Shown here: piece by piece, positions 27,284 to 27,365 of the stretch
How positions within the stretch are numbered: position 1 is the stretch's first letter
Layout of the letters: each line of letters opens with the position of its first letter
Sequence record: PV654397.1
Reading direction: 5' to 3' (one strand)
Length of the DNA stretch: 64,000 nt
Made by a program: the position numbers and the translations under genes
The notes under the pieces: model-generated
The model's input: the letters and a program-made list of their open reading frames with translations, nothing else
Databases searched by the model: none
Told to the model about the DNA's origin: nothing

Positions 27284-27365
27284 TGGCCCAGGCGACAGGA
27301 CTCGAACCTGCATACTCCAGTTACTCGATTAACGACGGTTTAGAAGACCGTTGAGATACGCCCGG
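27284..27365 (-). tRNA. D-armless tRNA-Arg(UCU)-like RNA
   Basis: acceptor CCGGGCG/CGCCTGG, G73, CCA; only 7 nt before ACGGT-CTTCTAA-ACCGT; 23-nt extra region; GCAGG-TTCGAGT-CCTGT. Confidence 0.75.

Follow-up and report, generated by a model that had tools for sequence, protein, structure and literature searches.

A conserved phage tRNA-Arg family with a probable block-permuted cloverleaf core

Locus and sequence features

We analyzed a 64,000-nucleotide stretch of sequence record PV654397.1 (the window), which is part of a jumbo phage of Escherichia (genus Asteriusvirus), and within it an 82-nt tRNA-like RNA encoded on the minus strand at positions 27284–27365. The window has 35 per cent G+C and carries nearly every gene on the minus strand; positions 26500–28500 are 100 per cent identical to phage WPEC5 and 98 per cent identical to phage BF17 and its relatives. 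The RNA is probably a functional phage tRNA-Arg in which blocks of the cloverleaf core are permuted, and which decodes AGA and, by wobble, AGG.

From 5′ to 3′, the RNA reads CCGGGCG UAUCUCA ACGGU CUUCUAA ACCGU CGUUAAUCGAGUAACUGGAGUAU GCAGG UUCGAGU CCUGU CGCCUGG G CCA (Table 1). The building blocks listed in the initial annotation of this locus are all present in the minus-strand sequence: a 7-bp acceptor stem with one G.U pair (CCGGGCG/CGCCTGG), a discriminator G, an encoded CCA, a T arm (GCAGG-TTCGAGT-CCTGT), and an anticodon arm (ACGGT-CTTCTAA-ACCGT) with anticodon TCT. Equally, the place of the D arm holds only 7 nt (TATCTCA), and a 23-nt stretch, CGTTAATCGAGTAACTGGAGTAT, precedes the T arm. 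The 7/5 geometry of acceptor stem and T arm, the 5-bp anticodon stem, the 7-nt anticodon loop with U33 and a purine at 37, and the UUCRANY T loop are those of a tRNA. No local D hairpin is found between positions 9 and 26, as only 7 nt lie between the stems there.

ARAGORN calls Thr, Asn, Met, and Ser tRNAs in the window and makes no call at 27284–27365. The Rfam tRNA model (RF00005) matches the element with 32.6 bits (E = 0.0012; curated gathering cut-off 29), but only in an alignment that sets 4 nt against the 15 D-arm positions of the model and inserts 20 nt into the variable region.

Table 1. Parts of the tRNA-like RNA gene, and other features of the window that are discussed in the text.
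Feature	Position	Strand	Description
Acceptor stem, 5′ strand	27359–27365	-	RNA 1–7, CCGGGCG; pairs with 72–78
U8 A9 U10	27356–27358	-	U8 and A9 would correspond to canonical 8 and 9; U10 faces U43
Helix P, 5′ strand	27353–27355	-	RNA 11–13, CUC; proposed D-stem 3′ strand (23–25)
A14	27352	-	Opposite C39; proposed 26.44 layer
Anticodon arm	27335–27351	-	RNA 15–31, loop CUUCUAA; anticodon UCU at 27342–27344
Connector CGUUAAUC	27327–27334	-	RNA 32–39, from anticodon stem to helix P 3′ strand; replaces the variable loop
Helix P, 3′ strand	27324–27326	-	RNA 40–42, GAG; proposed D-stem 5′ strand (10–12)
D-loop-like junction strand UAACUGGAGUAU	27312–27323	-	RNA 43–54
T arm	27295–27311	-	RNA 55–71, loop UUCGAGU; fits the Rfam tRNA consensus
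Acceptor stem, 3′ strand	27288–27294	-	RNA 72–78
Discriminator G79 and encoded CCA	27284–27287	-	Read from the sequence
PD-(D/E)XK endonuclease open reading frame	27372–27776	-	PF11645, E = 7.6e-22; directly upstream of the tRNA, free-standing
Tandem paralogs of 54–60 codons	26776–27262, 28926–29096, 29642–29824	-	Start MTH(E/K)EW(M/L)
HNH-type endonuclease open reading frames	22326–22733, 24523–25065	-	Two, among the tRNA genes
tRNA-Asn(GUU)	25130–25214	-	85 nt

Covariation and conservation of the helices

Homologs of the element were compared in an alignment of 55 distinct copies (A1) and in a larger set of 71 distinct copies of the main family. Across the 55 copies, 94.7 per cent of the cells in four helices are paired, as compared to 63.7 per cent in shuffles, and 19 of the 21 pairs show double changes. 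Compensatory changes occur in all seven pairs of the acceptor stem (99.2 per cent paired) and in four of the five pairs of the T stem (99.3 per cent paired), and all five pairs of the anticodon stem covary. The fourth helix, which is absent from the initial annotation and which we refer to as helix P, joins positions 11–13 with 40–42 and encloses the anticodon arm. In the 71 copies (to which the counts below also refer), pair 11–42 is CG in 70 and UA in 1; pair 12–41 is UA in 40, GC in 17, AU in 12, and CG in 2; and pair 13–40 is CG in 55, GC in 9, and UA in 7. All 213 cells of helix P are thus Watson–Crick pairs, in at least nine different helix sequences, and pair 12–41 has the second-highest mutual information among all column pairs. 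Taken alone, helix P is 100 per cent paired versus 73.8 per cent in shuffles, with none of 500 shuffles equaling it, and control helices with the partner strand slid by 1–3 columns are only 12–41 per cent paired.

Helix P bears directly on how the 7-nt gap is to be understood. The initial annotation regarded the RNA as D-armless in the manner of animal mitochondrial tRNAs, with a GTTA/TAAC hairpin in the variable region and, behind it, a TGG resembling G18G19. We consider a truly D-armless tRNA of this kind unlikely. The letters of the hairpin are indeed present: pairs 34–45 and 36–43 can form in all 71 copies and pair 35–44 in 67, pair 33–46 is G.U or G-C in 45 (50, if five A-U copies are counted), and the TGG that follows is invariant. 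The hairpin is also topologically compatible with helix P, as an H-type pseudoknot. However, not one pair of the proposed hairpin (33–36/43–46) shows a compensatory change, which leaves it unsupported by comparison. Of the 63 copies with both bases of the closing pair, 33–46, 13 have G.G, A.C, A.A, or G.A there, and 8 more copies have no position 46; a C35.A44 mismatch stands uncompensated in four independent copies. In divergent members, the connectors TCA, AGTC, AGAAA, and ACAAA contain no GTTA and make the hairpin impossible, yet UAAyUGGA is still present. Moreover, helix P provides an equivalent of the D stem, so that the term D-armless does not describe this RNA. A mitochondrial-type D-armless tRNA would have neither a D stem nor the nucleotides of the elbow, and here UGGA is invariant or nearly so.

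U8, A9, U10, and U43 are invariant, and a divergent family member with anticodon GCG, on contig L079, has A10-U43 as a Watson–Crick pair. At positions 14 and 39, 52 of the 71 copies have A.C or C.A and 17 have a Watson–Crick or G.U pair, with a mutual information of 0.82. The connector of the main family varies at 33 and 35, but C32, U34, A36, and A37 do not change; divergent members have it shortened to approximately 3–5 nt. In the strand that follows helix P, A44, G48, G49, G51, U52, and A53 are invariant, and A45, U47, A50, and U54 are conserved in at least 96 per cent of copies. A45 and U54 change only in the copy on contig L076, where they change jointly, to G/G. The likeness of the TGG to the G18G19 of a D loop holds, as G48 and G49 are found in every copy and lie within a D-loop-like motif. 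In the family of the window copy, this strand, UAAyUGGAGUAU, stands directly 3′ of helix P, and UAAyUGGA...AU is retained in all divergent members.

Two other pairings were considered and rejected. Pairing of CUC (11–13) with the second GAG (49–51) fails because GGAG is fixed while 11–13 varies. A GUA/UAU hairpin (42–44 with 52–54), which would rival helix P at G42, involves columns that are invariant apart from one change at 42 and one at 54.

Family and distribution

In a blastn search, 272 phage records match the 82-mer, and 263 of them cover at least 80 per cent of it. Eleven independent genome records are identical to the element, and approximately 260 more are 80–99 per cent identical. 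The suggestion in the initial annotation of a topologically rearranged tRNA with an AGA-reading anticodon is thus borne out as a real and conserved form. Within Asteriusvirus, 24 records have 97–100 per cent identity. Matches at 80–91 per cent are found in Sugarlandvirus (infecting Klebsiella), Felix O1 and many members of Felixounavirus, KB57-like Klebsiella myoviruses, Justusliebigvirus and other coliphages of approximately 146 kb, N4-like podoviruses, and Streptomyces phages. Carriers also include Vequintavirinae and T4-like phages, so the family spans several unrelated phage groups and hosts. Most records carry no annotation of the element, and a few label it tRNA-OTHER, tRNA-Undet, tRNA, tRNA-Leu, or tRNA-Val. 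Standard annotation thus misses or mislabels a widespread family, which, if the RNA is charged and used in translation, exposes a blind spot of tRNA finders.

Viral contigs of IMG/VR were scanned with three patterns anchored on different parts of the element. Scans 1 and 3, in which the anticodon was left free, returned 69 and at least 120 stretches, and scan 2, in which the anticodon loop with TCT was fixed, returned 64. The 5′- and 3′-anchored scans each regained the opposite half nearly unchanged; in the 5′-anchored scan, the 3′ motif is unchanged in 58 of 64 matches and nearly so in 5 more. Both in phage records and in viral metagenome contigs, copies are nearly always located inside tRNA clusters. 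Among 185,579 bacterial and archaeal species genomes, we found six matches, of which two are due to chance and four are real, all on contigs of metagenome-assembled genomes (MAGs). Because only these four real copies occur in species genomes, the element is phage-borne, with no hint of a cellular origin.

A covariance model built on the permuted tRNA-Arg family (R1) scores family members at 74–102 bits (97.9 for the window copy) and ordinary tRNAs of the same loci at no more than 34.5 bits. Mid-range scores belong to divergent members that have the same architecture and the anticodons TCT, ACG, GCG, and TCG. The viral contig L079 has as many as three permuted genes for tRNA-Arg, with TCT, GCG, and TCG, at 478–555, 3326–3402, and 3407–3493; the TCG copy has an additional hairpin within the D-loop-like strand.

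Decay of an ordinary gene, be it through deletion of the D arm, through pseudogenization in the traffic of endonuclease genes, or as an artifact of assembly, is extremely unlikely as the origin of this form. Homing-endonuclease genes do lie all around the element, and one of them seems to have deleted the neighboring tRNA-Ser(UGA) here; the lack of an ARAGORN call would also fit a damaged gene. Against this stand the identical and 80–99 per cent identical records listed above, the compensatory changes in four helices, and the fact that homologs in phages keep the same architecture, which disposes of the sequencing deletion or recent pseudogenization that the initial annotation named among its refuting cases. 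Furthermore, a copy that is truly truncated looks quite unlike the intact family. It lies on a MAG contig (L082, 1458–1540 and 2103–2179), where a main-family copy ends inside the T arm and is followed by approximately 560 bp, which, judged by eye, may hold an open reading frame on the opposite strand. Beyond these lies a divergent permuted tRNA-Arg that is intact and has the connector AGUC. This layout looks like the product of an insertion or a partial duplication.

Other unusual tRNA-like RNAs were encountered among the contigs. A 64-nt RNA on L097 (1336–1399; also on L126, L127, L128, L138, and L141) combines a normal D arm with an acceptor stem and a T arm but has UCCGAUUGGAGUAU in place of an anticodon arm. 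It shares UGGAGUAUG, the motif 5′ of the T stem, with the permuted tRNA-Arg family. An 80-nt tRNA-like sequence (L093, 6792–6871; L142, 543–622) has D and T arms and a long middle part that ends in AAUUGGAGUAUG, and it scores 35 bits with the family model.

Arginine identity and decoding

Among the 71 copies, the anticodon is TCT in 67, CCT in 2, TCG in 1, and ACG in 1, and divergent members add GCG, TCG, and ACG, so that every anticodon found reads arginine codons. In Escherichia coli, the determinants recognized by arginyl-tRNA synthetase (ArgRS) are A20, C35, U or G at 36, and A or G at 73. In the family, C35 and U/G36 are found in 71 of 71 copies, and A50, the proposed equivalent of A20, in 70. 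The discriminator is G in 34 copies, A in 31, U in 5, and C in 1, so that 65 have G or A; 48 of the 71 genes encode CCA. The restriction to arginine anticodons may reflect a single origin together with the anticodon requirement of ArgRS, which would limit drift to anticodons that keep C35 and U/G36.

In ten genomes of Asteriusvirus, such as those of ph0011, G17, Sharanji, and UE-S1, exactly this slot is occupied by a canonical tRNA-Arg(TCT), and the tRNA-Ser(UGA) and the array of 54-codon genes on either side are likewise shared. None of the ten is among the 24 Asteriusvirus records with the permuted gene. Copies also occur in large tRNA sets, such as those of 23 (L020), 17 (L009), 15 (L063), 14 (L084), and 13 (L066) tRNAs, and we found no second tRNA-Arg(UCU) in these five within the up to approximately 15 kb examined in each. 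In 85 open reading frames of the window, AGA makes up 18.5 per cent of arginine codons. The corresponding share in E. coli K-12 is approximately 4 per cent, several-fold lower. Overall, the sequence evidence leans toward a decoding tRNA-Arg: the anticodons are those of arginine only, the ArgRS determinants are kept, and the gene substitutes for a canonical tRNA-Arg.

An RNA with these features could also serve as a tRNA-like decoy or regulator, for example, as bait for a tRNA-Arg nuclease or a defense sensor, or as a ligand of ArgRS, without decoding. The initial annotation likewise named a decoy or a nuclease-resistant mimic of a tRNA as an alternative. A non-canonical core might not suit EF-Tu or the ribosome, and phage tRNA clusters are known sites of counter-defense (PMC10264068, PMC11555353). 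Nevertheless, we regard this as improbable. The gene stands in for the canonical one found in the same slot of sister genomes and fills the UCU position in phage tRNA sets that are otherwise near-complete, and AGA is heavily used. The anticodon loop, U33, A37, acceptor, discriminator, and T loop are as in decoding tRNAs, and drift within arginine anticodons only is what is expected if charging and decoding must match.

A second alternative, that the extra region is a class II variable arm and the RNA is charged by seryl-tRNA synthetase (SerRS) and reads AGA as serine, is very unlikely. It draws on the length of the extra region (23 nt), the G discriminator of the window copy, and an anticodon stem identical to that of the adjacent tRNA-Ser(UGA) of BF17. 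However, there is no covarying stem-loop between the anticodon and T arms, as a class II tRNA would have, and RNAalifold finds no helix there. In addition, the discriminator is not fixed, and the A20 equivalent is conserved. SerRS ignores the anticodon, so free anticodon drift would be expected under serine charging; only arginine anticodons, with C35 and U/G36, are seen.

Proposed architecture of the core

We propose that the RNA is a tRNA-Arg whose segments, in canonical numbering, would follow one another in the order 1–9 / 22–47 / 10–21 / 48–76. From the 5′ strand of the acceptor stem, the chain would pass through U8 and A9 to U10 C11 U12 C13 (equivalent to 22–25) and A14 (26), enter the anticodon arm (27–43), and return through the connector to G40 A41 G42 U43 (10–13). 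It would then run along the D-loop-like strand to U54, which would take the place of Y48 directly before the T stem, and into the T arm. Within the D-loop-like strand, A44 would correspond to A14, A45 to R15, U47 to U17, G48 and G49 to G18 and G19, A50 to A20, and A53 to A21. The strand resembles AAUUGGAUA, the D loop of the canonical tRNA-Arg in the sister phage ph0011.

With U10.U43 as the counterpart of the canonical 22.13 layer, the five base pairs of the anticodon stem, 14.39, the three Watson–Crick pairs of helix P, and U10.U43 would stack in 10 layers. Because a canonical anticodon stem, the 26.44 layer, and a 4-bp D stem also add up to 10, the L shape, the elbow contacts of G18G19 with the T loop, and the ArgRS determinants could be retained. 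The backbone would be re-joined at three points, from 9 to 22, from the variable loop to 10, and from 21 to 48, all of them in the tRNA core, and by analogy with known tRNA structures the residues at these points are likely to be neighbors. We infer the residue-by-residue mapping in three dimensions, as well as processing of the RNA, charging by the host ArgRS, and use on the ribosome.

Several points weigh against this reconstruction. Energy-based folding, of the single sequence and of the alignment, yields the three ordinary stems and neither helix P nor an alternative to it, and the z-score of single-sequence folding is only −0.61. Because energy models predict neither helix P nor the GTTA/TAAC hairpin, the argument for helix P comes from covariation. 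The U8.A44.A53 triple, the Levitt-type pair A45.U54, and the 10-layer stack are structural predictions, and the sole covariation that supports the three-dimensional mapping is the copy on L076, with both 45 and 54 changed. If columns 40–53 are moved behind column 9, ARAGORN draws a cloverleaf tRNA-Arg for 71 of the 71 copies, as compared to none in native order. Other block moves, including one with the hairpin of the initial annotation, are also accepted in 71 of 71, and therefore the block swap indicates compatibility and nothing further. Part of the invariance seen in CGTTAA, GTAA, and TGGAGTATG comes from the search patterns themselves. Finally, the permuted and canonical forms are not strictly exclusive: on contig L038 they lie side by side, the canonical tRNA-Arg(UCU) being the downstream one, at a distance of 20 nt.

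Genomic neighborhood

In the window, the permuted tRNA gene lies 6 nt downstream of the endonuclease open reading frame and 21 nt upstream of the next one. Promoter-like sites lie upstream on the minus strand, one of them at 27829–27800, with no terminator-like site after it on that strand, and the tRNA probably shares a transcript with the endonuclease gene and is cut from this polycistronic RNA. The block at 27371–27794 precisely replaces a 94-bp block of BF17 that contains tRNA-Ser(UGA); this tRNA seems to have been lost here to insertion of the endonuclease gene.

The tRNA-Ser(UGA) of BF17 (L002, 2370–2459) and the anticodon arm of the window copy (27335–27351) have the same anticodon stem, ACGGU/ACCGU, and 19 of 21 nt around the loop are identical. 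The tRNA-Ser of ph0011 has a different anticodon stem. The stem shared by the BF17 tRNA-Ser and the permuted tRNA-Arg may be a result of gene conversion between neighbors.

Among the other features of the region (Table 1), the array of short MTH(E/K)EW(M/L) paralogs lies directly downstream of the tRNA, recurs nearby, and has no Pfam match. One of the two HNH open reading frames has a NUMOD3-like N-terminus and scores below Pfam cut-offs. The tRNA-Asn(GUU) of the window has a class II-like extra arm, GUCA-GAAA-UGAC, in its variable region, and long tRNA-Asn genes (83–87 nt) are also found in phage tRNA clusters such as those of L005, L063, L066, L070, and L075. The long tRNA-Asn may be another conserved non-standard phage tRNA.

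Persistence of the permuted form

Our leading guess for why the re-threaded form persists is escape from a nuclease or defense system that targets tRNAs and reads their structure. More specifically, it is conceivable, although we hold it only tentatively, that the RNA is competent in translation and that its re-ordered core hides it from a host or rival-phage factor that reads the architecture of the D arm and variable loop. Were this so, re-threading would be a form of counter-defense distinct from the mutations in the anticodon loop that have been described. That phage tRNAs can counteract immunity directed at tRNAs is known (PMC10264068, PMC11555353), and Septu is reported to cut tRNA-Tyr outside the anticodon loop, in the variable loop (PMC13096335). 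Since tRNA-cutting defense outside the anticodon loop is known, escape from a nuclease is a reasonable hypothesis.

The alternative is a neutral rearrangement that occurred once and spread with mobile tRNA clusters. In 90 distinct contexts, we found no conserved protein gene beside the permuted tRNA, and the largest cluster of neighbors has five members; the neighbors are assorted HNH endonucleases, a RegA-like regulator, and proteins without assignment. As no conserved protein gene travels with the element, nothing points to a dedicated enzyme. In many phages, the element is bordered by homing-endonuclease genes of several families, a setting consistent with frequent horizontal transfer of cassettes from tRNA clusters.

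Comparison with known systems

To our knowledge, the arms of the cloverleaf are taken to follow the same order in all decoding tRNAs, and the exceptions we know of drop arms or alter stem lengths, with none that re-orders them. In the literature searched, which included a minority of subscription journals, we found no account of a permuted tRNA topology. In phages of Enterobacteria, including the classic phage Felix O1, of Streptomyces, and of uncultured hosts, the chain appears to link U8, the D stem, G18G19, A20, A21, and Y48 in another order. If such an RNA is charged and used on the ribosome, it shows a backbone topology that is tolerated by ArgRS, RNase P, EF-Tu, and the ribosome, offers a natural scaffold for engineered or orthogonal tRNAs, and becomes a candidate for a new route by which phage tRNAs escape tRNA-directed immunity.

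The closest relatives in function would be canonical tRNA-Arg(UCU), such as E. coli argU, the tRNA-Arg of T4, and that of ph0011. The permuted RNA shares with them the anticodon loop CUUCUAA, the 7/5 geometry, the T-loop consensus, a G or A discriminator, and a UGGA motif with A20, as well as the genomic slot (in ph0011) and presumably the task. Unlike in canonical tRNA-Arg, the putative 5′ strand of the D stem and the D loop come after the anticodon arm, the D stem encloses that arm, and the D loop serves as a strand of the junction instead of capping a hairpin.

Metazoan mitochondrial tRNA-Ser(AGY/AGN) and nematode mitochondrial tRNAs resemble the permuted RNA in having a short connector, with no hairpin, between the acceptor and anticodon stems; that mitochondrial tRNA-Ser and the permuted tRNA both concern AGN codons is a coincidence. 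In D-armless mitochondrial tRNAs, the D stem and the elbow contacts between G18G19 and the T loop are lost. In contrast, equivalents of the D stem and the elbow are strictly conserved here, in a bacterial host with standard translation factors.

Non-canonical order of segments in DNA is also known from the circularly permuted tRNA genes of Cyanidioschyzon merolae and the split tRNA genes of archaea. There, the mature tRNA regains the canonical form, either by processing through a circular intermediate or by trans-splicing. Here, the 3′ half is neither upstream of the 5′ half nor on a separate transcript, and only internal blocks are swapped. With the acceptor ends already at the ends of the gene and the swap confined to its interior, the new topology should persist in the mature RNA itself.

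Lastly, the tRNA-like structures (TLSs) of viruses, of which the 3′ TLS of turnip yellow mosaic virus is an example, tRNA-Sec, and allo-tRNAs are similar in that an L-shaped fold recognized by a synthetase is reached by non-standard threading or stem lengths. TLSs, however, are part of genomic RNAs, use a pseudoknot to build the acceptor arm, and have no decoding function, and in tRNA-Sec and allo-tRNAs the arms follow one another as usual. The permuted tRNA described here instead has a free-standing gene; its acceptor stem is ordinary, its anticodon arm is a true one, and its core, as we propose, is re-ordered.

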